A stretch of DNA of 64,000 bases from Selaginella moellendorffii (taxonomy: Eukaryota > Plantae > Lycopodiophyta), in assembly GCF_000143415.4 (NCBI RefSeq), contig NW_003314309.1, forward strand, positions 980,641-1,044,640, given 5' to 3'. Positions within the stretch are counted from its first letter, which is position 1, and the number at the start of each line of letters is the position of its first letter. Position numbers and translations under genes: made by a program. Below are positions 9,001-47,616 of the stretch, in pieces. The notes beneath the pieces are model-generated. The model was not told where the DNA came from and made no database searches. It saw nothing but the letters and a program-made list of their open reading frames with translations.

Positions 9001-9087
9001 ACACAAATGCCAAATTCCCGCGGTTTTTTGAATTTAAAATATACTTTGTGAATATTCTCGAGGGTTTTAGTTGCCCTAAATGGATTC

Positions 9088-24042: not shown

Positions 24043-24659
24043 GGGAGCGTGGACCATATTTGAGCTCACAAGCTGAAGAGTTGAGCTGAAGAGTTGAGCT
24101 CAATTTTCAATTGTAATTTAGTACAAACATTATAAACTTTAAAATTTTAAAGTTATGGCGAACTTAATAATTTCATAACTCTCTATATATTATATAGATA
24201 AAAATGTTCTAAAGGACACTTCTTGTTCTAATAATTTAAATATTTACTACATGCAATAATAGAGACGTTTGTTAGAATATAAAATAAAATGTTTGCAAAA
24301 AGAGTATTCTTGTCACTTCTTTAAATTTGTACTTTGTGCTTTCTAGCTAGTAAATATCAGGTTTGTCAGAATTTTAAAATTATTAAATTTGAATTAAGAT
24401 TCTATATAAGGCCATATAACCATTTGAAAGGAAAAAAAAACAACTGTGATGGTACATATGCTCTCACAATACATTGTAACATCATACATCCGAAAGACTA
24501 TCACGAAATATTTTTTGAGAAGGTAAAGACAAAAATGGAGACTCACAAATACTATGGGTAGTATTCCGAAAAGAACCTCACAAGTATATGAAATGAAAAG
24601 TGAAATAATAAAATATTTTTATTAATTATATAAGGTATAATTAGTTTATATTATTGATA

Positions 24660-27600
24660 GAGAATAAACATCGATAGTGCTGGAAAATCTAATTAGATCC
24701 AAAAATTTTCTGCAACTCGGCAATAGTAAGGCTTGCTTGGTGTATATGAATATCCACTTTAGGATCCTGGTGCAAGATGTTGATGAAGATGTAGTACATA
24801 TGCTTGCAAGGAGCATATGCCTTCCCATGTTCCTCGCACTTCGTAAAGTCTGGACATGTGCAAGAAGGAAAGTCTTGAATGGCAATTGTGTACTCTCCAC
24901 CTTCTGTTTTGACTATGTACTCCTTTGCGAGCGCAGTGATGTACTTCGTGGAGAGAATCTCACACTCAAGTGTTTGAGCCAAGTTTATTTTACCTTGCTT
25001 CTACTTGGAGATGGTACCAATAAATTTAACTGCCTTACCTTTTCGTGTTAGCCTCCTGTGCATCTTTGTAGGAATAGTCTTAGTTCTGTCACTCATATCT
25101 CCAACTCTCTTCTCAAGATTGAAACCAGATTTCTCAAGGTTTTCAATCTCATCCGAGGTGAGCGCAACCCCATTAGCAACCGGCCATTCTTTAGGTATTG
25201 CATCAGGTTTAGTCACTATAGTGTCTTCAAGCCGTTTTGTATGGTTGACATCAGAGTTGCAATAATATAACCAACACCATCTTGAAAATCCTGCTTGCTT
25301 TCGTTCCCCATAGAAACATGGGGCTGGAACAGAAGTAGACTTATCACCACGGATCCAAGCCCAACACTTGCCCCTTGGAAGCATCCCCACACACTTTACA
25401 TTTGATTTCACTGGCACTCGACGGATTGCCCATTGCTTCGGCTCCACACTACGATAACCAATTTCAACCTGTTGTGATGCACTTTCTTCATCAGCCACTT
25501 GAGGTGGTTCGGTTCTGGGGTGATGTCTTGGAGCAGAATGATACTCAACATCAGGCCTGTGAGAGCTTTTTGCTCCAAGATCCGTGCCAACATCTTCACC
25601 AGCAAAGGAAAATCAACGCTTTGAGTGGACGGTCTTCATATCACTAATAGAAGCCTGAGAAGTGTACTCCATAGATGTGCCGCAGACCACTTCCTCCACT
25701 GCAGTTGCCATTGTTCGTGCTGGTGGAGTCACTTTCTTCTTCATCCGATCGTGTAACATCTCAACTGAAGATCCTGTTCCCATGTATCTTCCTTCCTCAA
25801 ATGCCAAGGCTTTTGAAGACTGCTCTATAACGCATATCAAATCTGATAGACATGCTTCATATAGACTCATCTTCCCTTTCCCTGCCTCACAGGAACGCCA
25901 GCTCCAATGTTTACTCTCTGAGAGATTCACAGTTGGGATGTATGCAAGATCCTCAAGTGGTTGATCCTTATAAAAAAATGATATTAAAAAGCAATAAAAA
26001 GAGAGGAAAAAAAGAAAAACCAACCTGAAAAGAGTGATATCCCCATTGGAACATTCTAACTTCCCACCACCCCAACCATGACTCAAGTTGTGGTAGACAA
26101 CTTACGTCAGTATGGCCATCTTCATGCCACCACATTCAGATCTCATTTGCTTTTGCCTCATGCTCTTTTTCAGAAGGTGCAGCTTGCCATTGTTTGCACA
26201 ACTCCTTAAATGTTAATTGGAAATCTGGCTTGATAAGGTGGCAGTGTTGGTTTAGGCTCTGAGCCCAATGGAACTCACAAGTCCTCTCATGACCTTCTAG
26301 GGGTAGACCATTCCCAAAGACTGCCCGGACACCATTCCAATTAGCCCCAGCCCCATCTGCCATGAAACTGCGAAAGTTGGCAGGCTTACTAGTCCGCTTC
26401 AATACAATGTCGGAGAGGGACTTCCAAAATATTTCTTGAGCCATTTGGTCTTGTACTTTAAACTCTGCCATTGCAATTGTCAAGTTACAACGTAGCCTGT
26501 GAAAAGTGCAATGTTTAAAACCATTTTAAGATAATGAGAAAAAAAACTACCTCGGATCATACATATCAGCTCCCATGGTTGTCCAACCCACCACCCGCTC
26601 CATATGGTTAAAATGTACCCATGCATTAGCAAGGTCACTCGACCCAGACATATCCATTCGGGAAACAAGATCCACACCAGAGGCAGGGCCCATGGTAGAC
26701 ATTTTGAAAACAAAGGGGCGCTCTTGCTCACTAACGACTTGATCTGGAAATAAACTCTCATGGATAAACTCATAGGGACAAGTTCGTTTTAGTTCAAGGA
26801 TTGAGTCGATTTTTTATTGGAGTTTCCCCTCTTGAGATTCACACATCCAAAATTTTATCCTAAATAAAACAAAATGTAAGAGAGATATTATTGAAAAGTA
26901 TGTAATAATATTTTCATACCTGAGGCTAGTTGCAGGTTGCACATGTCGTAGTAACTCCCGCAAGCTAGCCTCATCCAGTTGAGTATTCTTGTAGTCCGGA
27001 TCAAGTAAAGTATTTGCGATAAAATCCTTGAGCACTGTCTTTTGAACATGCTTCGGAGTTGCAAATGAATTTCTCACAGTCTCTATCTACACTGCATCTT
27101 TGAAATGGTTGACTGAACTCCTTTGTATCCCTTCCTGCATTGGATGTGTATGCGTGCCAATATGTACTGCAGCTCTATCAACCTCTCCATCCCGTGGAAG
27201 AAAATAGTACATCTTGGCCCTGCAAATGGCATGACACAATGGAGCATTCTTGCAAAACCGACACTTGAATCCAACACCAATAGTGTCATAGAGGGGAGGA
27301 TTGGTTGCAGATCCTTCAAAAAATATAGAGTTTTTACCGCGCTCTTGATTGCATGCTTTATTCACACAATCCAAATATGCTCTATTTCGTTAAAGTGGGA
27401 TTTATTCAGTAAAATGGGACTAGGTACAAATTTTCAAGTATTTGAAAATGACGTGAAATTATATGTTTTTTGTCCAGGGGCTAGACATATCTGGGGCATG
27501 GTGACTAGCGCGGTGACTTTGTGTCCAGATTGAGTCCATCTGGTTGTATAATAAATCTCATTGTCAAGGTGAACAAGCCGAATCTGAAGCTAAAGAAGAG

Positions 27601-28310
27601 CGATGGCATGCGCGCACACACTATTTGTTTGTTCATTGAGCGTGTGGTGAGCTTTCCAAGATGAACGTCATTCCTATTAGCCAGACATATAACTTAATGG
27701 TGAGAACATTTAGATATTATTCAATGTTATCTTTTTCTAACGAATCTAATTGTGAAGGTGTAGCAAGAGGCATTGCTAGTTTGGAGAAGTCATTTAACTC
27801 ATTTGACCCTTAGTGTATTTTCATGAAACTAAATAACATTCATATTATTAAGGAATTTCTCTAGTACCTTTTTTTTATGACATAGAGGCTTGCATTTCTT
27901 TCAAAGGTGATTTAGTAAAAGGCCTGAGGGCACATGCCATTCTATTTCTCAGACCGGTATTAAGATATACTAGTATCAAAGGGAAAAAGGTATTTGGTGA
28001 TCAAGTAAATGGCATGAGGGCACACGCCATTATAAGCCTAAGCGCTAGTGGACACCTCCTTTTTGGTACTCTCAGCGGTACTATCATCTTTTTCCGGGTC
28101 AGTTGTTTTGCTTTGGATTGTTGTCTCTGACGTTACTGGGGCGTTCTCGATAGTTGTTAATGTTGCCGTTTGTTCAGAAAAATGATCACCTGGAGTATAG
28201 TACGGGGAGTTTGGAAGACTTATATATTCTACATCTTCACCTATCTCCTTCTCCGTCTCCTTTTCTGCCTCATTTACAGATTTTGTGCTTGCCATGAGAA
28301 CGCTCTTCAC
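24660..28310 (-). pseudogene. MULE-related transposase-like gene with GCM-like zinc domain and SWIM finger (multi-exon, disrupted)
   Basis: CVNKAC..CRFC..C..C.AKMYY..AVHIGTHTHP; WVHFNHMERVVGWTT, FMADGAGANWNGVRAVF, RTCEFHWAQSL, PTVNLSESKH; SWIM SCTCPDF..PCKHMYYI. Stops and frameshifts present. Confidence 0.75.
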
Positions 28311-31300
28311 CCTAAAATATGGAGTTCGTTGTGTTATAAAAGGAAACTAACACACACGCTGCAAGGGAATGATGGTACATAAAGCACGTAAGCCCACAAT
28401 ATGGGTTTATGTGCCATTAATATGGGCCACACGCCATATTATTAGATTTATGCACGTGTGATTGGTAAATGCATATGTCACATCATCTTTGTTTTACCTC
28501 ACACACTATATCAGGCCTAATGAACCATATCACATGTGCGCACATGCTATATATATGGAGAAGTATTATGCAAGGATAGAAAAATTCAATGCATGATTGT
28601 GGAGAGCAATGGCATGAAGCCACATGCTAAATAACATTTTAGAGAAAGAATTAAAATAGAAACATACAAACAGTACTGAGTGGACCAAGACTTAGAAGTG
28701 CACAATTGAATGAGGTATTTCTAATAAATATTTCACTCACCTCATATAGGAATGGCTACCACTCTCAAATGGCGTATCGCCTCATGCCATCACCTCGCAA
28801 TTTGTTATAACAATCCAATGAATTTATATTCGGCTTGTTCACCTTGAACTTTAAGTAAGATTTGCTAGAACAACTAAGAATTTATACTTGTTATTTGTAT
28901 CATCTCACCTAGGAATGGCGTAAGGCCACATGCCATCACGCCTCCTCTGATTCAGATTCGGATTGTTCACCTTGAAATAAAATACATTAGAAACTTAGTA
29001 AAGGAATATTAATGAATCTCACCTTGAACCCGGGTTATGAATGCTCTTGCTGCATCTCTTGCATGGTCTGGAAGCATCCAACCATGCACAACATTATCCA
29101 CCGATATGCTCATGCTGGGATCCCTTGGATTCAGCACCCATCTCTTTTCTAGGCAATCCTTCGTATATCCGGAACTTGGCTTAAACCACTCCGCAGTTAC
29201 ATTGAAAGAGTTAGTTTCTGCGTCCTCCTCTGCATCAGTGATGCAGTGCCCCACCCATATCATTTGTTTTTTATTACTGGGTCTGACAAGCACGACCATT
29301 CCTTTGCAGACCTGTACTGGATTAAATGCTGAATCCGGCTTCTTGTTCCTCGGCCCACAATAGTGATCCTCAACATCGTTATCTGTCACTGCATTTCCAG
29401 AGGACATTGTTCCGCTACTATCTGGTGCTCTGGGTTCTAGCCAAAAGGACTCTTCCAATTCCTCATATACAACTGGCCCATTTTGGATAGTAGATATAAT
29501 CTTCTCCCAGTATTCGATCAAAGGTTTGCACCTCTGAAAATAGGATTCTCCACCAAACACCAACCCCCTCTTCCAGAAGGCAATATGCTGTCTAATCCCA
29601 GCCACTATACTTTCCTGGTCTTTGAGTCCATCCGGGTGCATCGGCCGTGGGGAACCCTGAGTAATAATAGGTTCCCCAATTATGGGATCTCTCTTGAAGA
29701 GTTCAATGCCGTCCACTGGCAGCCACACTGTGTCCCATTCTCTCATCTTGTACCTCATCACTGGAGCACCATCACGCATGCTGAAATGAAACTGAAGAGG
29801 CTTGGAGTGGCCAATCAGCGTTTCGGATCCGTCCCTGATGTAGCCTCTTACAAACCCCTTAAAGTCTGGAACCTCTGTCACAAGTGCAGCTTCAACAGTG
29901 CCTTTGATGCAATTTTGGAATTCATCGTAGAGTTGTGGGAGGGTGAGGACATTGGATCGCCGGAGGGACTCTGCTAGGTGACTGAACATGGCATCGACGT
30001 CTTCATGAGTGTGCCCAACCATGAGAAAGCCAAGTGTAACCGTTTCAAATATGCCTTTGGCAACAAGCATCGCCAAGTACGCGAAGACGTACATGTTTTT
30101 GTTCTCACTGCTAGCATTGTCTGTTTGGAGCAGAAGATGGGGTGGAAGGCCATATCGGCCGCAAGAACTTCCTTGAGATTCTGCTTCGTTTGGATGAGGC
30201 TGTGCATTCACCGGGCGACCAGCCTCGTCGGAATGGCATGAGGCCTCACGTGATAACCCTACAATCTGACGGCCAACATATTCACTGGGATGGCATGAGG
30301 CCCCACGCGATACTGCAAGCCTTTGCTCCTCCTCTAGCTGAACCCTGTATGGGGTTCGATCGACAAGGGCCTTATGCAAGGGTTGGCCGTTTAGCTCAGT
30401 CTGCGCACTTTGCAGAGACCTTAAGTGTTTTGCTAGGGACGCAATCATCATGTTTGCACCCCCGACAACCCATAGAGGTACAAAGAAGTTCCCATAGTTC
30501 TGGGCACCATGCCCATGAGCGATTATGCCAAACAGAGACACAGGCAGCTGCATGGATGAAGAGATTGCCTTGGGGGCAGGATTGAGTCGAGGTAAGCACG
30601 TCTTTTTCTGGTCCATTTTGTCGTGGATGATGCAGAGGTAAGAGTCAAGTCTCTCTATGGAGAGAATCCTGTTATGATAATATGCAGTCCTGCAGCTTCT
30701 CTGCTCGATGTTGTGGTCGAGCTACCTTCTAACCAACGTCTCTCGCTCTTGAGCGATGCAAGAATTCTTCGACAAAGCCATTTTGATAGCAATGCACTCG
30801 TCACACTTTGAAAAGCTGGAGTACTTTCCTATACTCACATCCCTGAACCTGTTTCTCCACAATCTACTAAATCTAGATTGGCTCAGCTTCCTGTAGCCAT
30901 TACTCTGGAGTTCCCGATTCACATCTTCCAATATGGCCAACTTGGTATACATGGAAGGGAGAACTCGTTGGGTGTCTCGAGTTCCATCTTCCAAGAGGCG
31001 GGTTTTATGTGGTTGCTGCTCGGTACATGTCTCGACAAACCTCTTGAAGATTGCCTCTCCATATACAACATGACCCCTGGTTTTGTGAGTACCGTCGTTC
31101 CCATGGACTGCCTGTTGAACCCTTTGTTCCTCGAACTCAGTTTTGATTCTGTAGAATGTGGTTCGAGGGACTCCATAAATGATTCTCCATGCCTTCATGC
31201 AGACCAAACCCCTCTGGAAGACCATGCCCCCCACCTGATGTTTTGAAGCATCAACAGATGACCGTAATGCCTCATACACAAAATTGCGAGCTGCCTTCCA

Positions 31301-34300
31301 GGACAATGTCTTGTATCTTGCTCTCTCCTCTTCAATAGCATCCCAATCAGCATGTTGACAGCACCTCCTCTTGCAACAAGCAACTATCGAGACCATTCAA
31401 ACCTCCATCGCCATTTTCTGCCTTTTCGGTTCGTTGCTCAGATCCCTTTGGCTGCGCTTTAGGAAGGTGTAATTTCTTTTCCCATGAAGAGATGTTCTGT
31501 CATCAGTTGTAGTGGTGTTTGATTGTGAATCCTTCACATTCTCAAACACTAAGTGCCTCAATTTCCACCGCACAATGCTTCCAATAGTCAGACTGTTTTC
31601 TTCTGTGTCAACAACCTCTAAAATCGCAACTCCAATATCATCCCAGCCCAATTCTTGATTAGCAACCGCATCTCTTGGATCGACAACTGTGGCTAAGCCC
31701 TCAGCTACCACCTCCCCCTCGGGGTTGTTTAGAAACACCTTTGCCTGAATCCATGTAGCACGGTTCTTAAGATCCACGGAGGGAACATGCGTCACACTTG
31801 CGGAGGCCATTCTGAAAGTGCAGAAAAGAAGTTAAGACCATAAAAAAAATGATTGGAGAATGGCCTAAATCATAACATACCAAACAACCTCAATAGCATG
31901 AGGCCACATGCCATTATTCAAACATGCTATTGACACCCACGTGAAATTTCACATTCACAAAATTGGCATGAGGCCTCATGCCATCTTGATATACACACAG
32001 CTGCAGGCAAGTAAAAACATACATGACAATACACTAGCCATGAAATTGCAAGGGCCCAAGATGGCATGTGGCCTCATGCCATTTCTAAATGTGGTCCTAA
32101 GCCATTCCATGGTGAACATACCAGGAAGCACAAGTGCCGAATATCAAGAGGAAGCGGTAGCCACACCAAAGACAGTGCCGCTTGCAACACCGCAACTACT
32201 CGTAGCGCCGCTCGCAACACCGCAACTGCTCGTAGCACCGCTCGCACAAACTGCCACTCGCATAAACTGCCGCTCGCAATGGCGCTTGCAATGCCGCAAC
32301 CGCTCGTAGACGCATAAACCACAGCTCACAACGCCGCTTACACAAGCAGTGCTCACTACGCTCAGCGGAACCAAGAACACGGCGCACAAAAATGATAGAC
32401 CTAGGAATGAGTTCGAGAATTCAAAAATAACACACGCTTGAACGTCACATCAAATCCTCTGACAAACCAGATCTTATGATTCCTCTGACAAATTTCAAAC
32501 TGAGTAGCTTCTAGACTTTGCTGTCGGAGGTTGAACTTTGTCACATCATGTCCTTGCCTCGATCCAGCTGTGCCATGTCAGTGATTCGAACTTTGCCATG
32601 CCATGTCAGCGATCTGCGCCAAGATTATTCGCCGTGTAAAGGAATAATTATGCTGTGTGTGTACGTTCATTTATGGCAATATAAGGCCACATGCCATTCA
32701 AAGAATAATGCTAGTCGAGCATTTTTTGGTGCATTTTTGGGTTCAAAATTGCATGAGCCCACACGCTATAAAGTTTACCTATACCAAAAATAGAAATAGC
32801 TTTATTTACTTGGGAATTTAAGTGGTTGAGGCATTTTTAAACTTACAAACACATGCCCTACTTACATTCCTTTGGTTGCTTAAAATTCAAAAATATTATA
32901 AACCTTTCTTTTTGCATTTTCAATGTTTTCAATTATGGTTTTTGATTTTCGCAGGACCAACCTAGTAATCTATTTGCATCCCGTCATGTTTATAGCTAGC
33001 TTTCGTTTGTCCCCTTCGCTAGCCTGAGATACATCTGCTCGGCATCTGCCTCTTACAGCATTTGCCCAGAAAGGGCATCTTTCTTCATGCAGCATTTGCC
33101 ACATGTTTAGGGTTTAGGGTTTAGCAATTCAGTAACTTGATAAACATGCAAATACAGAACTTGATGCAAAATCCTTTGATATGTCAGGACCATAAACACA
33201 TTTTAATAGAGAGGGTCCTTTCATTTCATAACTCCTTACGTAGATCTTGGTGAAACCAGAGTTAGTGAAGTTGGTTTCTTGTGATCCCGCATCTGATTGT
33301 GATGTCCCTTTGCAGTGTCGATGGAAAGGTCAATGCACACCAAACTGTAGAATCTTGGAGCAAAATAACGGTCGGATCTATGGGAAATGCCCTTGAAACA
33401 TTGTAAAGCTCGTGTGGTCTCATGTGGTGTCCGATCGAGATGCTTCTTTGCAGGGTCATCAAGAAGGACATTGTATACCATTCTTTATTTAGCTGAACAT
33501 CTGGCATTTTTGGAAATACAAGATGCTTTGGAATATCCAATCATGCATGGTATAAATATAGCGAGGGTATTAAATGATATCCCAATCATGATCTTTCTTT
33601 TGGATTTCGCGTGCATGCAGTCCGAGGAATGATGACGTTGCGGATTTCTTTTGGATTTCACGTGCATGCATGCGCACGGCGATCCAGAAATTAATGGTGG
33701 CGCCCAAGTCCGAGGAATGATGACGTGGCGGGATTACTAACCGTCGTGACATTTCGCGCGTGTGAGGTTAGGTTTTGCATCGTACTCGCGCTCGCACACT
33801 CGCGCTCGCATCGCGCTCCCACTCGCGATCACGCTCACATTCGCGCTCATCTACCTTCTCTACAGGTTTCTCGTGTGCATCGGCGTCCACTCGCGCTTGC
33901 ATCACACTTGTGCTCGCATCGCGCTCGTGTGCATCGGCGTCCACTTCAAAACACACCTAGTTTGTAACTTCGCCGCCAACTCCACCGCCCACTCCGCCAC
34001 CCACACGCAGCCCACTTGGCGTCCCGGGAGATTTCAGCGCCACTCTCAAACTGTAAGTGGCAGAGTAGCCTTGCTGCTACGATCCGCTGCACACATAGTG
34101 CACATTCGCCAGCGAGTCCGGCCTCGATTGTCACGCCTCCATTCGGCTTCAAATGGTAAGTCTTTTAGGCCAAGTAGAAAATGGCATGAGGCCACATGCT
34201 ATTCAGTAGCAACATTGGCATGCACCGATTGGGCTCTCGAGTGCAGTCCGGTTACAGATGGCGTGTAGCCTCACGCCATCTTAGGATGCAACCTCAAGAC

Positions 34301-37300
34301 ATCTGATGCAGTGGTGAATGGTGTGTGGCCTCACGTTATTTCCAGCTGCTAGTTTTTCATCTATCAGCTCTAATTGTTGTGCATTTCTGAACAGGCGAGG
34401 AATTGCGTTCTTCTTCCAGCCACTGTCAATGTGGATGCAAAGAAGGGGGAGGAGCTCACCAGTTGGACTTTTGGGATGGAAGGCGAGGATCTGAGGCTGT
34501 ACAACATAGATGGTGGGAGAAAAGAATGCATAGGGATCCTCATCCAAGTGACAGACACTCCATGCAGTTCCATGCAAGAATATGGACTGGCACTTGTGGT
34601 AGAGACAGCATCCGCCTTCAAGATCCACCTTGCACATCCTAGCGGCTTCCCGGAGGGGGGCAGCGGCTATGAGGAATTCCTAGAGGGAACTAGGGAGAGG
34701 TTGTCCAGGAGGCCCACAATTTCAAAGACGTTGCGGGTCTATGAAGATCACATGGAATCCACGGACCTCACCTACGGCGATGTTCAAAAACTATATTCCA
34801 ACATTGAGCCATTGAGAGTGCCTCCAGTTCGCGAAGCGAAGGGGAAGGTGGTCGATCTGGAAACTACCCCGAAGCAGAAAAGGGTGGTCAAGCTCAAGCC
34901 GACGTCCGACTCTCCTGCTCCAAAAAAGAAGCTACTCGGTGATGCCATTGCCTCGGGTTTGAACACTACACCCACCAAAAAGAAGAGCCGCAAAGAGCAG
35001 AAAGAGCAAGAAGAGGCAGCAAAAATCGTCGCAGATAATAGTACTTGTTACTATTCCAACAAAGTATATACAATCGACGTAAGCCGTATCGACATCCAAA
35101 GCAAATACAACCACAGGCTAGTATCTGATGAGTGGGTGGAGAAACTGAAGCAGAAGATGCTGGCAAGTCCAGTAACACTCGACATCGCAGACGTGATCCC
35201 CTACTACCGAACAATGAAGGGTGAGACGAGGTTTCCAGACTTGATCAATAGGAAGGTGTTGGACGATCAGAACATCTGGTTCTATGCCGTCTCCGGGCAG
35301 CATTCTAGCTTGGTGATGCAAGAGATAGTTGTGGATATTATGGTGGGCGAGGAGGTGAAGAAAGTCTTCAAGACAAGAGTTGTCCGCCTGATAAAAGGCA
35401 ACTCGCCCCTCCGATCTATCATATACATCTCCCACGCACAGAATGTCAAGCAAGAAACGTGCTACAAATTGGGTCTGCACGAGACATTGGCACGAACACG
35501 GAAGCTCTGGGTTCAACTGAAGAAGCCACAAAAACTAGGATAAAGATGTGCACTAGCAACTAGCGCCTAGTAGGTAAGCCTCATTGCATGTGGCATAGCA
35601 TGTGGCCTCACGCCATTTCCATTGCAGGAATTCTCGAGTCTTCTCTCGAAAACACTGGGGGTCAATGACACACTCAGCATCCATAACATTCTACTCGCGA
35701 CAAAAGTTGTTTTTGACAAATGGGTAGATGTGCTGAGGAGGTACCATGATGGGGAGTTGCTAAACTCAATGGGTGTGGAAGACGGCCGGAAGCCCAATGA
35801 TTTGAAGCTCAACGCCTTGTGTTTCTCGTGGTCTCTAGACGACGATGACCTTCTGACAGTGGCTAATGCTCTTCTATGTGGTGAGGTAGTCTTCAACAAG
35901 ACCAAAATGACTCCTGGCCATATTGTGACATACGAGGACTTGTGCACGACTCTGAGAGCTCGTGCGCTATTGAAGGATTGGATCTTCGAGCAAGTGGCCG
36001 TGGAGAGGGTGAGCATCGACACCACGCAAGAGATGATGGAAGAGCTGGAGTTGTCAAATGAAGACATCGACGAGTACGTGAAGGGGGCCCCCAAGTTCAT
36101 CGATCTGCTGCGGGATGCCATGAAAAGTAAAGCTGAGAAGTTGGATCAGTATCCAAATTTCATTAAGAGGGATGTCGACCGCCGGCTTCAGAAACAGCTC
36201 GACCCCACAGCAGAGGCCTATCGAGAACCTTACCGGGTATACGTGAATTCGGATGAGGATCAAAGGTGGAGGAGCATCGTTTCCCGTGAAGATGAGCAGG
36301 TCAAGAACATCTTTTGTGTGATGGACTTCACAAACGAGGAGATCACTCATGCAGACGAAGTCAGCTCCATCATTGACTTAATGGTGGGACTTGCGGAGGT
36401 GGAATCTTCAGTCCACTATATGATCTACGACTCCGAATCCTATCACAAGTTCTGGAAGGCCTTGAACGAGGTGAAGGCTCGGTTGAAAGGCAAGGAGATG
36501 CAGGAGATCCATGGGATAATGGCTAAGAAGAAGATACCAACGAATGTTCGCATCTTCACACTCGCCCTTGTTATTGGTCCTGCAGTAGAGTGGGACTGGA
36601 GTGACTTCCCAGCTTCGTTCGACAAGGCCGATCGAATTGATCTGAGGGAGGTCAATTTACCCGTGCCTGAGGAACTGAAGACGGCTATGGAGCTTTCGAA
36701 TCCAGAGAAAGCTCCAGGTGCAGCATGGGAAATGCTCAGCTGGGTCTTCAATGCAATAGTGGGTGGGTCACCTGCTTCCGACTCCAAGGGCAAATGCGTT
36801 GTCGAGTACAACTGCGGCGGACTATTCTTTCGAGCCGCACTACTCAAGGGTGTCCTGTGTGTTGCGGTGACAAACTCCATTGAAGAGGTGACTTCAATGG
36901 AGCATATAATTACAATTGCCAAAGAAAAACAGTATCTTCTCTGCGAACCTGGTGAGTACGCACTTTAAGTTTAAATGTTATCTCACAAGCTCTGTATGCA
37001 GGAGCGTGGCCACCCCCAGATGCTGAAACGGCGTTAACAGCTACTGTTGAAGATACCCATATTGGGCCGAGCTCACAACCTGCACAAGGTAAGGTCACGT
37101 GAGGCCTCATGCCATTTTGATTATAGATCGTTGTGAATATTCAGACACGAGGACTGAAAAGCGCACTGGTGGCGTGTCGAAGAAGGACAAACAGACAAGC
37201 AATAGGAAAAAAAGGAGGTACAAATTATATTTGCAATGGTGTGTGGTCTCATGCCATTCCTTGCAGGAGACACTTCTTCAAAGGCAAAACAGGCAAGCAC

Positions 37301-38761
37301 CAGCCAAGCTCAAACTGACAGTGGTCATAAAAAGCGAAAGCACGTTGGACAGTCGTCGGGATCAGAGGCGTTTGATTCGAAAAGGAAGAAGGGCAACGAA
37401 AAGATGATAGGTAATGCCTCGCGGTTATGGCGTGTGTGCTCATGCCATTCATTGTAGATCAAGGGCTGAGTGAAAGTAGCCAGTCACCACCTCCTGACTC
37501 AGATTCCTATGGCGGACTCCCCTTCCCTAATCTCAATGGAGAGGTACAATGGATGAGGGATGCTTTTCAAGTCAGGGCCACGTTTTTTTCATCTCGTCGT
37601 CTTCGAAGGGTGCAAGAACGTGCAAAAACCATGTTAAGACAGTCGGGTGAGGATACGGTCCTAGGTCACGCACTAAAACAGGCTATGGATGTCTCGTATT
37701 TTGAGATGGAGACTCGGCCAGATGATTTTCCCAAGATGGTCCTGAAAGAACAAGCCATCCAGCCTGAGCAGCCTATAGAAGAAATGCAGGAGGGGGATGA
37801 GGAGCCAGAGAAAGATAATGAGCAGGAAGAGCAGAAGGACGAAGAGGAGGACAAAGAAGAGGAGGACGAAGAAGAGGAGGACGAAAAGGACTTGGATGGT
37901 CCCCACAATGGTGACGATCACAATAATGACAACGACGATGATGACGACGATGGCCAGCCTGAGGTGGCCAAAGAGCAGCGGAGGAAGGTCATACAAGACA
38001 AACCATCAGGTAAATAATAGTACATCCATTCCTAACCTTTTACCATTTCTAACATTGTCCATGTAGGTTGCAAAGCAAATGGTAAGTAGAGATTATTAAG
38101 TTGAATTAAGATACAAACTCTAGCCTTTAGTGTCGAGGAAGGATAGTGCCAAGCAAGGGTCGAAACGTATGTCCAATCCTTCAGAATCAGCAGTGCGCCC
38201 AAGTGATATCGGTCCTAGTTCCTCAATAGCAGTTGATGGTAAATACAATATAGTCGATTCAATGTGCTAATGAGTTTGTTTTTAGTAGCCAGTAGGAGGA
38301 TACCATCTCAATCGAAGGGAGATATTTGGACATGCATATGGATCCGCCAATGGACTCTACTTACCTGCAAGAGTTATCAGAGCTGGTGGAGGCTACTATC
38401 CATATCAACGCCAAGCAAGTTGACCACGCTCCACTTGATGCTGCCCATACCACTGAGTCAATCTTGTCCACGTATCCAACTGACGGTGACCAGGTGCCAT
38501 TGGATCCACATGAGGCCGCCCCAGCCGCCAAGCCAGTCGTATCCTCATTTCCAACGGACTCAACGTGTGCCCAATCGTCTGACTACACACCGTTGGAACC
38601 TCCCTACACCGCCCCTGCTGCCTGTTCGGTCATGTCCACTTTGCCAACGGAGGCACCAGCTGAAATGGCGTGTGATCACACGCCATCGGAACCACCCCAT
38701 GCCACTGTTGAGCCAGTTGTACCAAAGTCTACAGCTGAAATGGCATGTGCCCACACGCCAT
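27600..38761. repeat. Dispersed 22-bp palindrome ATGGCRTGWGGCCWCAYGCCAT (about 20 copies)
   Basis: Copies start near 27919, 28009, 28609, 28769, 28915, 30233, 30290, 31893, 31963, 32061, 34181, 34258, 34318, 35595, 37094, 37236, 37427, 38665 and 38740, plus more degenerate ones. Confidence 0.9.
29009..31810 (-). pseudogene. Sola1-like DDD transposase, one 934-codon frame with two in-frame stops
   Basis: ORFs 31397-31810, 30722-31396 and 29009-30616 share a frame, broken by TGA and TAG. Motifs FSKCDEC, IIHDKMDQ, LQTDNASSENKN and FLMVGHTHEDVDAMFS. The N-terminus resembles the Tnp1/En/Spm-associated domain. Confidence 0.82.
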
Positions 38762-39938
38762 CGGATGCGATTGACCCCACATTGCAGAGGAGAGTATTTC
38801 CGCCCTTCACGTTTCCTCGACCAAAACCCTCTCAACGACCATCGGGAGCACCATTCGCTAATATTGTAGATGGTAAAATTGACTTGTACCATTTTTTATG
38901 CTGACGCATTTCATTTCAGAGTCACAGCAAAGGTACTGTATCGTTTTTGATCTGAACGGTGTCCTTTTCTCCCATGAGCGTGGCTCGTCCTCGAATGTCA
39001 CTGCACCCTCCAAAGCCTGCGGTCACAAGTTGGTCAAAAGAGACAGATTCACATTAATCACACGGGAGAAACTGCGGGATCTAATAATGACCATGCGACA
39101 CTTAAAACAGAGGGCCGAGTTCAATTTGCAATTGGGAGTTTGGACATCCATGATGCGCCACAATGCATTAACGTTGCTACAGATGATGCACGATCAGACG
39201 CGAGTAATATTACCATTTGACTTTCTCCTAACGCAAGAGGATTGCTTGACTATGGTCCATGTGAGGGGTAGCAAGCCCATCTTGGGATAATGGGATAATG
39301 ACAATTCCCACTTTAACGAAATAGAGCTTAAATACCCACCACAATGAACCATGGACACTGTGCCTTCGAAATGTTGGAAATGTGTAGTCTTGATCTTGCA
39401 CCAGTTGTGGACATCCTGCTTCGTCTCCATCCCCTTTCATTTTGAGCTGACAAGAGGTGGTAGTTCAAAGAAGATATTGCCATTGTATGTAGATGGGAGC
39501 TCGCTAACAGGCCTATGCAGAAAGGAACGAACATTGATAGAGAGGCAGGAAAACTGGAAAGCATTGCAAACAGCTTGGAATATCAGTGAAGTTGAAGTTT
39601 GGAAATTCTTGGCTCGCATTGGACTAACATCTCCACTAGAACTAGAAGAGGAAGAAATGATGACAACCAACTCTTGCTTCACATTCACTTTAGCAGGATC
39701 ACAGCCTCGCACTTTGATTGGAGATCCAAAAACTCGAATCTCTTTCGACTTTGAATGTTGCAAATCCCAATGTTATCCACCTTCACCTACACCCGAAAGA
39801 AGAAACTCCGATCGTTTAACTACACCAATGTTGTTGCGAATCACAGCTTCCAATGAAATAGAACCGAGAGAAAGATCGAAACGTCGGCAAAGAAAACTTT
39901 CTGAAATAAGACTTTGGGAGAAAGAAAGCGGTGGGTGA
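34153..39938 (+). pseudogene. Cargo gene A: ParB/Srx-like domain, degenerate DNA amino-MTase-like domain, acidic/Pro-rich linker, FCP1-like HAD domain
   Basis: NHRLVSDEWVEKLKQKM..FYAVSGQHS (ParB-like); NPEKAP..KCVVEYNCGGLFFRAALLKGVLCVAV (degenerate SAM-binding motif I context); CIVFDLNGVLF..LGVWTS..LTQEDC (NIF/FCP1). Small GT-AG introns; the 38872-38919 intron joins the Pro-rich exon in frame to the HAD exon. Several in-frame stops. Confidence 0.6.
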
Positions 39939-40359
39939 TCTTGGTAATGCAAAAGGAAACCCTCCATTTTGTTGCCTTTAGGTTTTGGAACTTTGAACTT
40001 TTATAACGAAATGTCACCTCACATGTGCTATGCCATTATGTGAAAAGATAGGGGGATTTTATTCTAGGATCTAACATCGAATAATGTTGTTATAATAAAT
40101 TCTGTATGAAGTATATAAGACTATGTTGTACAATATTAAAAGTCTATATACATTGAATTCAAAAACATACTCAAATTTATTATATGCACTAACTTTTGGT
40201 AGAACGGAAAGAAATATCACCTCAAGCATGTGCCATAATATGAAAGATAGGAATGATTTTATTCTAGGATCTACCATCAACCAATTGTTGCCAAATAAAT
40301 TAAATATTGTACATATTTTCAGTACTTCATTAAAGCTAGAAATCATCACATTCTTCTGA

Positions 40360-40625
40360 ACTTGCGTGCCAAGTGCTTGGCCCGGGCATTTGGCCCAAGC
40401 CGGCCTTGGCACTTGGAGGCGGACCGGCGCCCGTACCAAGCGCCAAGGCCAACCGCCCGCGAGCCGGCCTTGGTGTTTGGAGGTGGGCCGGTTCTCTAGT
40501 GAACCGGCCCGCCTCCAAGTGCCAAGGCAAGGTTCTCGGACGGTTGGCCTTGGTGCAGGCTGGCCAAGGTGCTTGGGGGCGGCCTGGTTCGCCAGTGAAC
40601 TGGCGCCTGCACCAAGCCCACGCCC
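40360..40625. repeat. GC-rich island of nested CTTGG/CCAAG inverted repeats with a 60-bp hairpin (40468-40527)
   Basis: CCTTGGTGTTTGGAGGTGGGCCGGTTC-TCTAGT-GAACCGGCCCGCCTCCAAGTGCCAAGG; a further copy of the arm starts at ~40404. Confidence 0.85.
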
Positions 40626-40658
40626 TGTTCCACTCTTCTTATGCATTTATAATTTATA

Positions 40659-43600
40659 ATGAGTTTTTTTTATTTTCAGAAACAGAAGCAACTACAAAAG
40701 GAGAGGGATGTTGGATCAAAGAGAAGACATGAGGAAGATGAGATCCAGGACAACAATCAAGTTGACCTTCAGATAGAGATTTCCACAGTGACAACTCTAC
40801 CGTCTTCCCAACCAGATAGCTCCAGTCCACATGCACCCCCACCACCGCCATCGATGCCACCACCACCATTACCACCGCCACCACCTTCACCACCATTACC
40901 ACCACCGCCACCTTTACCTTCATCACCACCATTACCACCACCGTCATCACCACCATTACCACCACCGTCATCACCACCATTACCACCACCATTACCACCA
41001 CCACTGTCATCACCACCATTACCACCACCACTACCACCACCACTGTCATCACCACCATTACCACCACCACCGCCACCATCATCACCACCACCAGCGCAAC
41101 CATTGTCATCACTACCATTGCTGCCACAACCACAAATGCCACTACTCTTAACATATTCATAAAATATGCCAGAAACAGAGCAGTGCCCAAGTGCGCTTGA
41201 TGGTGGTGTTGGGCCCAAGTTGGGGGCTAGATCTGATAATGGTGCTATTGGAGGTGTAGCTGAAGCTGAAAGAGAAGTGGAGCTACCTGAACACATTGTC
41301 AACAAGCGCTTCCAAGAGACAGTTTTGAAAACTAAAGAGAAGGCCATTCACACGACTCTGGAGTCTCTCAAGTGGGAAGGCCTAGGGCACATGATCCGAG
41401 AAATCCCACTATGTCGATTCACTCAAACAAGCATCGTTCGGTCTGCTTCACCGCACTTCGTCAACATGGACATCTATAGTCTGTACAAACAGAATGGCCT
41501 TGGGACAAACATAGGTATGTTCCTTGTTTCAGTCTTCAAGCCAAGAACGACAAATACCCTCTTGGTGTCACTGGAAATCGAGAGGGATTGGGATGACATT
41601 TGGAAAATGAAGTTCTGTGAATTTGACATCAAGCTTATGAGCCATCCTAAGACTCAACAATTTGTGGGGAAAATGTTCTACATTATCGACGGGAATCATC
41701 GCTGGTGCGCGTGGATGAAGTGCATCCGAGAATGCTTCCGAGACGATCCTGTCTATCACATCAATGTTCCGGTTGGACATGTACACGCGAGAGGATCTCT
41801 AGATGTGGCAAGGCTTGTGATAGCTTGCCAGTCCTCTCCCTCTTCAATCACTTTTAACAATTTGTGTTTTGCAGGCTGGGACAGTTTGCAGTGCAGAAAC
41901 AAAGCCTAGTACATGATATCGAGCAGATCCGGTTTCTTGCCAATCTCGACGAGGATGCAGTCCGCAGCCACTATGGTGATGATTTAGCATCACTTATTCG
42001 GCATCAACGAGGTCATCAGGATGCCAATAGATGGTACAAGAATCTAGTGGCTTTTATGACAACTGTGTGGAGTAAGGTATGTTCTTTCAAGTATACTTCT
42101 TATCATAGAATGTTTGTGTTGTCTTCAGCCATTAGTGAAGGTTAAGCAAGATGCATATGCACAGTCGCATCGAGCTGAAAATGATCAAGAACTCTCAGAG
42201 CATTTAGCTACAATTGACAAAAAAATCAACAACACAAAGAAGACAAAGGTAAAGAAATTACTTAGTGTGGCTGACCCTCGACGCCCAAAGGAGTGGTTCG
42301 ATATTATAACAGAGATTGCTTGTCATGAAAGTAAGTATTGTTTGTGTTTACATGAAGGTTCTCACAAAAGTTATTTTTTCATGGGCAAGACTCCAGATGA
42401 GATTATTTACAACATCTCAAAGTCAAAGCTTACATATGAGGAACAGATACACATTCTGAACGACCTCAATAATAGACTCAGGGAAGGAGAAAAAGGTTTG
42501 GACAGTATGATGGAGATTGTGATGAGGAGGACTGTCTATATTTCACAAACTGTATATGAAGGGGAGATGTTTCTAGTGCCTTTCATAGGGGATGATTCTG
42601 AGCAACTTCCATTTAAGGATTTCGTCACCATTGAGCTTACAAAACTTGGAGAGGACTGACTGCCAAAGAAGGCCACAAGCACGACTCCATTTGATAAACA
42701 ACTTGGCCAACTTTACTTCATGCGTCGAGCGGCTTTCAAGTAACATACAATTTCTCAACTATACTCAATTGTTTATATTCTATTATAGGTATCTCCAATA
42801 TAGAGGCGTTCCTCTCGAAACACCGGTATGCACACGCCTCCTAAGGCATGGTGTGAGAGATGGAGGCATGTACCCGACAACAATGAAGTTTCCAGCAGCA
42901 ATAAAGCACGCTTGTCCTTGGGAATTGGAGATGCCAGATTATGAACCAACCCACCATGAGGCTGCAAGAGGCAACAATGATGGCGAAGATGATGGCCATG
43001 AGAATGTCGACCCTGTTGGTGCCAATGGCGAGCAGAGTAAAGATGGCGGTGAGAACGAGATTCTTCGAGACGAAGTCGAGCAAGAGAACTAGAACGTCCA
43101 AGAAGTTCTACCTCGACGAAAGCATGCAAATCCACATCTGGAGGAATTAGTCAACAGTGATGATGATCGTCCAAGACGTCCCCGTAACCGAGGAACTTCT
43201 CGAGGTATATTTCTTTTAATTCTCTCCTTTTCTTAGTTCCTTAAAATGGTTGTAGCAAAAACTGTCGGGAGTAACTTCATTCCAGCTCGTCTTGATGCTC
43301 GAGAAGAGGACTTGGAGGAACTTACATCTACCACACACCACATGACGGTATGTAAATTTTTCTTAAATTCACATCTTATCTTTGTCTTCTCCCCCTAGAT
43401 TCACCCTGTATCTCCAGTGGCATTCCATGGTGAAGTTGGGATCTTTATTGGCTCCTATAGTTCATTGATGGCATCTTTTGAGGAGGATGCTGAGAATATG
43501 GCTATCCGGCAAAAGTGGGAGCGCTTTTGTCAGAAGATCCAGGCGACCGCTCAAGAGCACAAACTTCATGCTCTTTGACATGCCAGATGGTCTTCCAGAC

Positions 43601-44258: not shown

Positions 44259-44688
44259 TTTATGATGTTTTAAAAACTTATAAATAATATATATTTAGTT
44301 TTCTAGAAGTCTTCCTAGATATGCATGGCACATCATATGCAATGTGTAAATTGAGGAGTGGTATGAAAAATCTATTTATTAATGATACATTAAAAGACAA
44401 TTGAATGCATCCATTTACAATGAGAAAGATGTGTCACATGTCAATGTGATAATGATTGTGACACTGATAGTGTCAATGCAGCAGATAGCGACAATAATAG
44501 TGTCAGTGACAGAGACAGCGTCAGTGTCAGAGATGACAAAGTTACAGTGTCAGTCTGTCAAATTTCATAATTACTAGTATTATCAGTTTATTATCTATAG
44601 GTAATACAATTTTGTTAATAAAAAAAAGGCGAGAGCGGGGGGGGGATGAATAATATCATAGTGTAAGAATTATTAGTGGCTGGAATTT

Positions 44689-45237
44689 TCAGTTGGATGG
44701 CCTAAAAATACCATATTCAGCACTTGTGGATGTAGGATTTACTAATGGAATATTGTTCCTCACCATGAAATGATAATGATTGTGTGTTCTTAACTCTTTC
44801 TTGATTTTCTTATACATCCATTTATGCACACCTTCCACACCAGTTCTTGGGCAGTTGTGACAGTGTTCTAGAAAAGTTTCTAGACCCATACAGCCTTCCA
44901 TTTTATCTAAATAAAAGTAGCAGATGGGACACTAGAGATAATATGTGTTCATTCTTTCAAAAGTTTCAACCATATCAGGAGCAAGATCTTGAAGAAACAT
45001 TTGGCATCGCTCTTGAAGCACATAAGGCAATCCATCTTTAGTAGCAACATCTAGAACATTATCTGGAAGAGGGATCTCTTATTCAGTCACACTTGGGGCT
45101 ACAAAAGAAAAAGCCTCACAACGATTGATGTATGGAGGGAAGGGTGGAATGTTGGTAGAAGTTGGAGATGGAGGTGGAGACTCATATGAAATGCATGGGG
45201 GCCAAGTGCGAGTAGCAATAGCATTTTCCCTAACCAT
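44689..45237 (-). pseudogene. Disrupted tandem paralog of the 45496-46047 gene
   Basis: EGCMGLETFLEHCHNCPRTGVEGVHKWMYKKIKKEL..NIPLVN..SAEYGIF aligns to the neighbouring ORF; the 5' part is disrupted. Confidence 0.75.
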
Positions 45238-45495
45238 TCCTACACTCTAAACAAACTGAAATTTCAATGTTGAAAGCATCCCTTGTTGGTATTTATACTA
45301 AGAAAAGATCTAGGGGTTTTTGAAAGTTTAAATTGTCAGTCTCAAAAATGGGACTTCAGGATTATAACAGTGTAAGAACCACTTGTATATATAATAATAT
45401 CTTTATATATGCTAGAATAATATCATTCTTGAAAATATAAGATTCTCCACTTTACTCATAAAGAATTAACCTTTTGAAAAAACTATGCATGACTT

Positions 45496-46047
45496 TTACA
45501 TTACATTAAAGGGTGGCTTAAATATCCCATATTCAGCACTTACTGATGCAGTGTTCACCAATGGAATATTGTTCTCCACCATGAAATCATAATAGCTGTG
45601 TGTTTTTAATTCTTTTTTGATTTTCTTATACATCCACGTGTGCACACCTTCCAAACCCGCTCTCGGGCATTTGCGACAATGCTCAATAAAATTTACCAAA
45701 CCCATGCAACCATCTATCTTGTTTAAATAAAAGTTGCATATAGGACACTGAAGATAATATGTATCTACATTAAGCTCCCTTGCCATATCTGGAGCAAAAT
45801 CTTGAAGAAAATATTGACATCGCTCTTGAAGCATTGGAGGCAATCCAACTTTTTTAACATCATAAGGAAGGAGTTCTTGTTCAGTTGCATTCGAAGTCGC
45901 AAATGGAAGAGCCTCACAACATCCCTCAAAATGAAAAGGAGGATTGTTGCATAGAGGTGAAGGTGGATTATTGGTTGAGATTGGAGATGGAGGTGAAGAC
46001 TCATATGAGAGGCCTTTGAGACCAAAAGTAAACTTCTTCCTAACCAT
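45496..46047 (-). CDS. Small unknown Cys/His-rich protein (CPIC..HCRKC), transposon cargo
   Basis: Open 183-aa frame from ATG 46047. Amino-acid-level conservation with the tandem copy supports coding status. Confidence 0.65.
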   Translation of the reverse strand: MVRKKFTFGLKGLSYESSPPSPISTNNPPSPLCNNPPFHFEGCCEALPFATSNATEQELLPYDVKKVGLPPMLQERCQYFLQDFAPDMARELNVDTYYLQCPICNFYLNKIDGCMGLVNFIEHCRKCPRAGLEGVHTWMYKKIKKELKTHSYYDFMVENNIPLVNTASVSAEYGIFKPPFNVM

Positions 46048-47137
46048 TGCAACACACAAGAAGAATTAAACTTCTTAGCAATAAGAATTCTCTCATTAAT
46101 ATACTATATTTCAATCTTAGGAATGATGTTTTATTATGACATGACACTATATTGAATGATAATTGTCAGTCTTAGTAATTACAACCTACTATGAGAGACA
46201 AGTGGCTATAGGGTTTCAGAAGCTAAAAACTAGCATATAATTAATATGTAGCCTTATTTTATATAGTTGGCCTGCCATATATAATAATAGCGAATATACA
46301 CAGGCACACGAGTATGCCTTTTTGCAAGATTACCTTTCAATCCCAAAATCATATATAGATTTAATTCTTTGATTTATCCATATCATATATCTTTGCAAAG
46401 ACAAAACATATCAAAAGGAATAAGATATATATAAAAAACTTACATTTTTTTATAATATTTTAGTGGATTACAAAAGCCATTGAAAGGTTTATAGAGTGGA
46501 TTTATTAGTGTTTTCCGCTGTGCTGTCCATTTCTTCTTTTCTCTTGCTCTAGATTGTTATTTCGAAAGTAACAGGAGCATTTTTATCAATAGTGACAGTG
46601 GTCTCCACATTCCCAGATGGGTAATAAGGACCAGGCATGGAATATGGAGATTATGGTAGTGAAACAAAATTAACATTCTCACATTTCTGTATGCTAGAAC
46701 TACTTACAGATTTTTTGTCTTCCTTGCTTCTCTGTAAACCCTAAAAAATGAACAAGTGAATCAGTGTTTCAAATTATTTATATATTTCTAGTCAATTGTT
46801 GAAATGTTAAAATGTTGAAATGTATAATAGAAATTTTAGGTTCATTCGAACTTCAATATTCCCATTTTATTTGGGACCAATAAAGCCCAAAAATTTCTAT
46901 GGGTTCAGACGAACTTCTAATTCTAGAAATTGTATAAACTGCATTAGAAAGATTCAAAAAATAGAAATCTCTGAACCATTGATACTTAAATTCATAAATT
47001 TCAAGTTCACCAAAGAATAATATTTTTCTGACTTAATATTTCCTTATAAAACTTATGGTTGACTATGTTGACTAGCATTGACTTGAGCTGAATTGAGCTC
47101 AACCCGTGAGCTCAACTCAACTTTGGACCATCCCCCC

Positions 47138-47616
47138 AATAGGGGACAGAGTCATAGTCAAGGTGAGAATCCCAAGGGAAGTGCACATTCCATTTGAAAT
47201 CAAACTTAAGCAAAAGAAGGGAGATGAGTCAAGGAGGATTCAAGTCATGTTGCTTTCAAATCCAAACATTTGCATTATCTGCCGAAGGACAGGAGACATT
47301 GGGAAAAATTGCTTGGCAAAAGGAGCAAGCATGGGGGAGGTTTAAGAGCTAATGGAGGAGAGATAAAAGATAACTAGTGGGTTGGAAGGGAAGAAATGGG
47401 GTGTCAAAGTGGAAAGAGAACCAAAGAAGAGATCTACTTCAAGTGGAGAAAGCAAGAAACCTTGAATCAAAGGTCAAAAGTTTTGATTTCCTATATATGC
47501 AAGAGTATAGACTCTCAAGTGTGGATTTGGTTTACAAGTTCACAAAAGGAAAATATTTTTGGAATCCAATAGTTGCATGCAATGGGGGTACACTAATAAT
47601 GGTTAAGGGATCATGG
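47138..47616 (+). mobile_element. L1 LINE middle fragment (ORF1 zinc knuckle, start of APE endonuclease)
   Basis: CIICRRTGDIGKNC; FDFLYMQEYRL..GGTLIMVK. Confidence 0.75.

Follow-up and report, generated by a model that had tools for sequence, protein, structure and literature searches.

Introduction

Sola2-Fanzor chimeric elements of dictyostelids are multigene DNA transposons of 10-15 kb, and Sola2 elements have an AWWT target consensus and inverted repeats of 12-22 bp (Bao and Jurka 2013, PMC3627910). Mutator-like elements (MULEs) are flanked by duplications of 8-11 bp, encode SWIM fingers and carry extra genes (PMC6446971); the latter include mudrB of MuDR, vanB and vanC (anti-silencing) of VANDAL and Hiun, and SET domains in Phytophthora (PMC6446971; PMC12730594). 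Fungal DNA transposons carry TET/JBP dioxygenases that are thought to counter silencing (Kojima 2025, PMC12730594), and eukaryotes have acquired phage ParB-linked methylases, the methylase domain of the DIRS1 retrotransposon being inactive (Iyer et al. 2016, PMC4738411). Here we compare with these systems a 23-kb transposon interval, positions 24043-47137 of a 64-kb stretch of Selaginella moellendorffii DNA from contig NW_003314309.1 (this whole stretch is the window, and positions refer to it unless another locus is named). A first-pass annotation had described the interval as a single giant Sola-like transposon with a prokaryote-style ParB/DNA-methyltransferase cargo.

The interval very probably consists of two nested cut-and-paste DNA transposons, which belong to different superfamilies and are both now dead. 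The inner one is a decayed 12-kb Sola-like element, the outer one a decayed 11-kb Mutator-like element, and the insertion site is the transposase gene of the outer element. The methylase-like gene is part of the outer Mutator-like element and not of a single giant Sola element. That a transposon at this locus carries a conserved gene with a DNA-methyltransferase-like domain was borne out.

Results

Termini and Insertion Site of the Inner Element

The inner element is bounded by 26-bp inverted repeats with one mismatch, A[T/A]GCTCTATTTCGTTAAAGTGGGA, at 27377-27402 and 39304-39329, directly outside which lies an AAAT target duplication (Table 1). The 64 kb contain exactly two copies of the terminal 22-mer GCTCTATTTCGTTAAAGTGGGA, inverted relative to each other, at 27379 and 39327 (0 expected). 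What had been annotated as one 23-kb transposon thus contains an internal block with inverted repeats and a target duplication of its own, and the DDD transposase, the palindromes, the claimed first ParB/methyltransferase pair and the NIF fragment all belong to this separate 12-kb element. The 23,095 bp, which had been held to have arrived as one unit, probably did so in one arrival bounded by the reported ends, but the content is that of two elements. Inner boundaries at 27378/39328 with duplications of 0-5 bp were also tried and left the joined flanks unclear; taking in two more terminal bases gave 27376/39334 and AAAT.

The best homologue of the DDD transposase open reading frame (ORF) is encoded by a 3.6-kb contig assembled from sequencing run ERR10900155 (L001). 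This contig matches window positions 31984-29921 at 97% identity and, after skipping 27511-29920, positions 27510-27376 at 99%; beyond that point its sequence is unrelated. The shared terminus beside unrelated DNA makes 27377 the end of a mobile unit, and L001 is, judged by this alignment, an independent copy of the inner element.

The gene into which the inner element inserted could be followed on both sides with the help of a related locus, L012, which together with L010 lies on contig ctg125114 of ENA sample ERZ25073694 (a metagenome; a distant eukaryote). With 27377-39333 excised, the minus-strand ORF that encodes the N-terminal zinc finger of this SWIM gene grows from 100 codons to 130. 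Of these, 34 codons come from the right of the insert, and they match the intact L012 gene immediately upstream of the zinc finger (z 8.3; score attained by 0 of 500 shuffles); the extended alignment of the severed upstream part to the L012 gene scores 95. By these alignments the inner element splits the coding region of a SWIM-bearing Mutator-like transposase gene.

Searches with tblastx and blastn found no sequence common to the inner and outer parts, and none common to the 23-kb interval and the rest of the window. The query labelled D2 had no match among phages and none in the PDB.

As first annotated, a single 23-kb Sola-like transposon would have produced an AATA duplication, with the DDD transposase mobilising it and the other genes as cargo. 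We consider this highly improbable. The outer ends, the subterminal repeats and the AATA are real, and a gene of the same DDD family (Pfam DUF7869) is found near the accessory, methylase-like gene in a second organism too. The DDD transposase, on the other hand, is part of a unit that has inverted repeats and an AAAT duplication of its own and shares its terminus with an independent copy. This unit splits a conserved coding sequence, and its termini are unrelated to the outer ones. The DUF7869 gene of L012 stands at a different place than in the window and the Mutator-like gene there is intact, which argues against a conserved composite element.

The Outer Transposase Gene and Its Conserved Partner

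The part of the outer transposase gene to the left of the insert comprises a SWIM finger (24692-25000), a D..D..CxxH core (approximately 26040-26813) and an N-terminal C..C..HxH finger (27090-27376), the last recognised by eye. Within the core, the blocks NAW..F[D/N]H..RV..WTTM...YD and FMADxAxANWNxVRxV are followed by ERTCxFHW, which holds the CxxH motif. In-frame stops at 27087-89, 26814-16 and approximately 26526 reflect decay. The MULE/SWIM gene noticed in the first-pass annotation is present as a SWIM-bearing transposase-like gene; the SWIM match has an E-value of 0.003 in the window (17.5 bits, cut-off 19.6) and 0.28 in L012, and CxCx..CxH is conserved in both. The profiles PF10551, PF00872 and PF03108 did not match any window or L012 ORF at E-values up to 1-5. 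Since no MULE, Mutator or KDZ profile matches, the Mutator-like call is based on motifs and on the order of the domains. This order, together with the possible 8-9-bp duplication, speaks for a Mutator-like element, and we assign the outer element to this kind by its architecture.

In L012 the same transposase gene is uninterrupted and consists of three long ORFs (tblastx blocks 4227-1464). A homologue of the first long exon of the accessory gene, here called the DGNHR exon after its invariant motif, is found at L012 10965-11144 (38% identity to the window, E 1e-9); it diverges from the transposase gene as in the window, and the methylase-like exons follow in order. A third contig, L003, is collinear with the accessory gene. 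As the same divergent gene pair is present in L012, the pairing is a conserved one and the outer parts on either side of the insert belong together. The methylase-like gene, annotated as Sola cargo, thus has a Mutator-like transposase as its synteny partner. Between the two genes L012 has palindromic units of approximately 105 nt, at the position equivalent to the GC-rich palindromic repeats of the window. The Cys/His gene to the right is duplicated, as had been reported (44695-45189 versus 45511-46008, 72% identity overall and approximately 80% in blocks).

The outer element resembles MULEs in its possible 8-9-bp duplication and inverted repeats of tens of bp, in the apparent succession of N-terminal zinc finger, D..D..CxxH core and C-terminal SWIM finger, and in having a second conserved gene that is plausibly chromatin- or DNA-directed. 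It differs in that the Pfam MULE models fail and in that the partner gene combines the DGNHR domain with a degenerate N6/N4 DNA-methyltransferase domain; no partner gene of this composition is described for MULEs in the literature searched.

Outer Ends and Flanking Repeat

The ends reported at 24043 and 47137 are real, with imperfect inverted repeats, subterminal repeats and a flanking direct repeat. Read inwards from the left the element gives GGGAGCGTGGACCATATTTGAGCTC, and read inwards from the right on the complementary strand GGGGGGATGGTCCAAAGTTGAGTTGAGCTC; ungapped, the two agree at 18 of the first 26 positions (binomial P approximately 3e-6). The inverted repeats are approximately 30-70 bp long, imperfect and built around TTGAGCTCA repeats, and the terminal pair is the sole long-range inverted-repeat pair of the outer sequence. 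The TTGAGCT(C) repeats noticed earlier do cluster within 70 bp of both ends, at 24060, 24081 and 24094 on the left and at 47083 and 47093 on the right, with reverse copies at 47096 and 47109.

The AATA given as target duplication is present at 24039-42 and 47138-41, but the direct repeat is 9 bp, CCAATAGGG, and 4 bp is one of several readings of it. With the inverted repeats in register a duplication of 4, 6 or 8 bp is permitted, while 9 bp requires a one-base offset. Under a 4-bp duplication the agreement of five extra flank bases would be fortuitous, at odds of about 1 in 1000, and the duplication is most simply read as 8-9 bp.

These ends could also be those of a Sola-like or other transposon, perhaps non-autonomous, that duplicated 4 bp of its target and merely carries the Mutator-derived and methylase-like genes, the five additional flank matches being due to chance or target preference. 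Its inverted repeats would begin with GGG at both ends, in register (20/40), and AATA is AT-rich like the targets of Sola2 (PMC3627910). We think this unlikely: chance accounts for the five further bases with a probability of only about 1e-3, AATA does not fit the AWWT consensus of Sola2, and an element whose transposase-like gene is full-length, of Mutator architecture and conserved together with its partner in another organism has the look of an autonomous one.

Removal of the interval had further been said to restore the frame of a long interspersed nuclear element (LINE). Joining the flanks gives an ORF of 82 codons to which the left flank contributes only approximately 14, and Pfam detects no LINE domain there, so the restored frame is weak evidence. 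An empty paralogous site was sought in the window; the duplicated flank (47617-49372, 53473-55222) stops short of the insertion site.

The Accessory Gene

The DGNHR exon has four homologues, with E-values down to 1e-8, and DGNHR is invariant in the five sequences. The motif recalls ParB/Srx and DndB. The domain has no Pfam match, the best being DndB (E 0.19, one member), and the family has no match in the PDB or among plasmids. It is possibly a domain of the ParB/Srx kind, the DGNHR motif being the sole basis for the ParB call.

The last two exons encode the methylase-like domain, whose motif I reads VIDCTAGSGS. PF01555 (N6_N4_Mtase) matches with an E-value of 5e-4 (20.6 bits, below the cut-off of 26.7) and PRK13699 with 0.005. 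When plasmids were searched with tblastn, 2,488 records matched (best E 1e-3), and among the matches listed 21 of 25 fell under annotated DNA methyltransferases. Against a hidden Markov model (HMM) of three plasmid methylases the exon scored 44 bits, compared with at most 1.7 for 200 shuffles; as the three enzymes were chosen because they match this exon, the independent support is smaller than the score suggests. The alignment with the methylase HMM covers only the C-terminal, motif X-I-III part and not the N-terminal half. In this part the domain resembles orphan beta-class methylases of plasmids and phages (PF01555, PRK13699), with ...CPTRGVVIDCTAGSGSMVEAARDSGRSVFVIE versus ...CPPRGIVLDPFAGSGSTCVAARQVGRRFFGIE (57% identity over 37 residues). 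The differences from these enzymes are that the expected DPPY has become DMPD (DCLEN at the motif IV position of the L010 homologue), that the hPTxKP stretch is deleted, and that the gene has introns and is much longer. The accessory protein keeps a half that binds S-adenosylmethionine (AdoMet) and has probably lost catalysis; it is probably non-methylating, like the methylase domain of DIRS1 (PMC4738411).

With its introns and eukaryotic homologues the gene is not fresh prokaryotic cargo, although a prokaryote-style cargo had first been proposed; the catalytic DPPY is missing as well. The outer element is similar to the fungal TET/JBP transposons in being a cut-and-paste element with its own gene of DNA-modification type, and differs from them in enzyme family, superfamily and host; the activity of the present accessory gene is, moreover, doubtful.

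The methylase-like gene, and perhaps the Cys/His ORFs, might instead be host fragments captured in the manner of Pack-MULEs and not functional genes of the element. Capture of host sequence is frequent among MULEs (PMC6446971), conservation of the Cys/His ORFs does not extend to L012, and the methylase domain is without DPPY. The order from DGNHR to methylase exons and their divergent position are, however, kept in a distant organism at 30-40% amino-acid identity, so that the capture would need to be ancient and the gene kept since. We judge capture to be quite unlikely, slightly more so than the 4-bp transposon considered above.

Candidate introns at 38873-38919 (47 nt, in the inner element), 42077-42128 and 43844-43892 have good GT..AG signals and are only 47-52 nt long.

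The Inner Transposase and Accompanying ORFs

The DDD transposase of the first-pass annotation was confirmed as a DUF7869 ORF, and with Pfam and NCBIfam at permissive thresholds DUF7869 alone was significant among all long ORFs. The protein collection contains 43 homologues, from a liverwort, a sponge, a hemichordate, a mussel, a stramenopile alga and many metagenomes. A structural model built with 24 sequences (predicted local distance difference test, pLDDT, 75) has an RNase H-like core in the order three strands, helix, strand, helix, strand, helix. The modelled Asp positions are IIHDKMD in the first core strand, QTDN after the fourth and HEDVD where the next helix begins; across 24 DUF7869 homologues the block GHTHEDxD does not vary. 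Foldseek returned no transposases with this model. For a beta-rich C-terminal domain (29012-29400, minus strand, residues approximately 475-550) its top matches were BAH domains, those of SHL, EBS and AIPP3 and BAH1 of DNMT1; these are weak (E 4e-3 to 0.03 over approximately 85 columns), and the domain is a possible chromatin-reading module.

Two codons of the transposase ORF are nonsense, TGA at 31397-99 (CGA in L001) and TAG at 30722-24 (CGG in L001), and L001 in turn carries deletions of 7 bp and 2.4 kb. From these lesions both copies are read as dead. The differences between the window and L001 are mostly transitions, for the most part C-to-T or G-to-A at CpG; both inner stops arose in this way, and the palindromes alternate between CATG and CGTG. 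Such a pattern is that expected of methylated, silenced transposons.

The inner element resembles Sola2 in its 4-bp AT-rich duplication (AAAT fits AWWT), its short inverted repeats (26 bp) and its size of 12 kb with a large transposase and unrelated extra genes. Compared by eye with the published Sola2_DFa-2 and PPa-1 (PMC3627910), HDKMDQ, QTDNASSENKN and GHTHEDVDAMF of the inner transposase resemble MDFKEN, SDGAKHFKS and HGKSDVDRHF. The termini are GCTC...GAGC, those of Sola2 DFa-2 GAGC...GCTC. The inner element differs from Sola2 in that it has no Fanzor gene, orphan extra ORFs, 20 palindromes and a possible C-terminal BAH-like domain. Its Sola-like nature is a well-founded lead on these likenesses, the name in Pfam being DUF7869.

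Two of the extra ORFs, at 34374-35540 and 35574-36965, are far longer than chance ORFs. They had been counted as one of two ParB-like plus methyltransferase-like gene pairs, and of this claim only the outer gene is left, in which only the C-terminal AdoMet-binding part is methylase-like; the inner pair is without homologue or family. A word-indexed protein search gave no homologue of 35574-36965, and an exhaustive HMMER search gave a single spurious low-complexity match to 34374-35540, outside the supposed ParB region. Neither ORF matched a Pfam or NCBIfam family, and comparison with profiles of the outer pair and of methylases gave no signal; the best score with the methylase HMM was 3.2 bits, attained by 2 of 300 shuffles. 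The FCP1/HAD domain that had been reported at the right end also did not hold. NIF (PF03031) matches below threshold (E 9e-4; 19.4 bits, cut-off 21.8) over profile positions 1-92 of 160, and the ORF reads DLNGV for the expected DxDxT and stops 17 bp short of the inverted repeat. It looks like a fragment.

Palindromes of DUF7869 Loci

The palindrome reported earlier is indeed specific to the element: there are 20 copies of ATGGCATGAGGCCTCATGCCAT with up to 6 mismatches of 22, all in the inner element (0.04 in shuffles), and no copies in the remaining 52 kb of the window. Two of them (30233, 30290) lie within the transposase ORF, in a linker that is absent from homologues and disordered in the model. 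Four DUF7869 loci of other organisms each have their own multi-copy palindrome of 20-22 bp around the transposase gene (Table 1); these differ in sequence and are alike in design, with two half-sites of approximately 10 bp, dispersed between and beside genes. L009 also has tandem arrays at 53-bp spacing (931-1321). The presence of an own many-copy palindrome at every other DUF7869 locus examined suggests that the sites co-evolve with the protein. Most simply, the palindromes would be co-evolving binding sites of a dimeric element protein, most likely the transposase.

Table 1. Features of the two elements in the window, with the palindromes of related loci
Feature	Position	Strand	Remarks
Outer element	24043-27376 + 39334-47137		11,138 bp (~11.1 kb) after excision of insert
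Flanking direct repeat, CCAATAGGG	24037..24045 (left); 47136..47144 (right)		9 bp; identical 9-mers
Left inverted repeat and subterminal TTGAGCT(C) repeats, outer element	24043..24110	+	
Right inverted repeat and TTGAGCTCA repeats, outer element	47070..47144	-	range includes right CCAATAGGG copy
3' three-quarters of outer transposase gene	24692..27376	-	aligns along whole length with intact L012 gene (scores 548, 264)
Upstream continuation of Mutator-like transposase gene	39334..39600	-	severed by inner element
Region between the two divergent outer genes	40074..41160		GC-rich palindromic repeats 40398-40587; Pro-codon tandem array 40798-41160
Accessory gene, first long exon	41163..41906	+	conserved domain, invariant IPLCR..VR..DGNHR..AW
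Accessory gene, last two exons	43469-43843, 43893-44255	+	49-nt GT..AG intron; beta-class N6/N4 DNA-methyltransferase-like domain
Tandemly duplicated Cys/His-rich ORF	44692..46065	-	not conserved in L012
Inner element, Sola-like (DUF7869)	27377-39329		11,953 bp
AAAT target duplication of inner element	27373..27376 (left); 39330..39333 (right)		directly outside inverted repeats
DDD transposase gene, inner element	29012..31810	-	~930 codons; PF25273 (DUF7869), E 1.4e-43
Two orphan ORFs, inner element	34374..35540 and 35574..36965	+	389 and 464 codons
Acidic ORF, Pro-rich ORF and truncated NIF/FCP1-like fragment	37415..39287	+	right end of inner element
Palindrome of inner element, ATGGC[A/G]TG.GGCC.CA[T/C]GCCAT	27919..38761		22 bp; 20 dispersed copies; flank each inner ORF
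Palindrome of L009, CCCACGGGTGWWCACCCGTGGG			at least 17 copies
Palindrome of L011, CCTATGGCTATGTGGCCATAGG			14 copies
Palindrome of L010, GCATCGGGRGATCYCCCGATGC			~8 copies
Palindrome of L002 (Calypogeia fissa), TCACGAACCATGGTTCGTGA			3-4 copies

Surrounding Window

Three long intronless pentatricopeptide-repeat (PPR) ORFs stand in a row at 5216-11471, the third with a PPR_2 match of E 5e-83; such a row is a mark of land-plant DNA. A Fic/DOC-domain ORF is found at 59800-60876 on the minus strand (Pfam E 7e-14, motif HPFKDGNGRIGR) and a related fragment, also on the minus strand, 48 kb away at 11875-12387. Each Fic/DOC copy adjoins a near-identical PPR gene (9141-11471; 61858-63879), which indicates a segmental duplication. 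At approximately 21100-21570 there is an assembly gap (run of N) beside a C-rich stretch that codes for poly-proline. A 1.75-kb segment is duplicated at 47617-49372 and 53473-55222 with 98% identity, and its 12/23-bp tandem repeats (GGAGTCCGAGATGGACCCGAG...) give long ORFs in all frames. Positions 2350-3513 of L001, in the flank of the second inner copy, are 72-78% identical to window 55979-57122 and represent a further repeat family.

Discussion

Two nested elements account for the independent copy with its shared terminus, the severed coding sequence and the conserved divergent gene pair, but several points weigh on the other side. The length of the outer duplication is ambiguous, and a 4- or 6-bp reading with GGG...CCC termini is possible. 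A second copy of the outer ends was not found, and in L012 the ends of the related element were sought without success. The SWIM match is below threshold, and there is no Pfam MULE, Mutator or KDZ match even for the intact L012 ORFs. The AlphaFold model of the DGNHR exon (5 sequences) is unusable at a pLDDT of 35. Sola membership of DUF7869 was judged by eye against published Sola2 sequences, and that any protein binds the palindromes is something we only infer. Lastly, a DUF7869 gene lies 3.5 kb from the accessory gene of L012, so that the association of the two families may be recurrent. The two families co-occur in 2 of the 5 DUF7869 loci examined, which may perhaps be mere transposon crowding. 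At L012 18798-20273 and L010 2886-7368, a DUF7869 transposase and palindromes are found 3.5 kb downstream of the accessory gene.

For the two nested elements we envisage the following course of events. The outer element would have come first, its transposase gene and accessory gene diverging from a common region. Its transposase would bind the subterminal repeats and move the element. For the accessory protein, a role as a helper that binds DNA or AdoMet is more likely than methylase activity; it could take part in transposition or counter silencing, in the way of VANC of the VANDAL MULEs. The 12-kb Sola-like element would have inserted at a later time, in the coding sequence of the outer transposase, duplicating AAAT. 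Its 20 palindromes are putative sites for a dimeric DNA-binding part of the DUF7869 transposase or for another element protein. Afterwards both transposase genes would have acquired nonsense codons, those of the inner gene by CpG-type transitions.

The claim as first stated would have meant a new class of giant transposon, and it is not upheld. The nesting of one decayed transposon in another is ordinary, and both are of known general kinds; multigene Sola2 elements of 10-15 kb and MULEs with extra, even anti-silencing, genes have already been described (PMC3627910; PMC6446971; PMC12730594). What is noteworthy is a transposase of Mutator architecture that is missed by standard profiles and is paired, across distant eukaryotes, with a degenerate DNA-methyltransferase gene. 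This pairing would extend the short list of transposons with genes of DNA- or chromatin-modification type (VANC, SET, TET/JBP). In addition, the five DUF7869 loci from different organisms, each with its own many-copy palindrome of 20-22 bp, point to a family-wide DNA-recognition system that is directly testable.

A more far-reaching joint reading can be offered tentatively, and we regard it as doubtful, although likelier than any of the three alternatives weighed above. The outer element would represent an undescribed, ancient Mutator-related lineage in distant eukaryotes with an obligatory second gene that joins a DNA-binding DGNHR (ParB/Srx-like) domain to a catalytically degenerate methyltransferase of phage/plasmid type, the product serving as an element-encoded reader or decoy of DNA methylation or AdoMet, for self-recognition or anti-silencing. 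The DUF7869/Sola-like class would use lineage-specific palindromes as protein sites and would have settled repeatedly in or beside the Mutator-like family.

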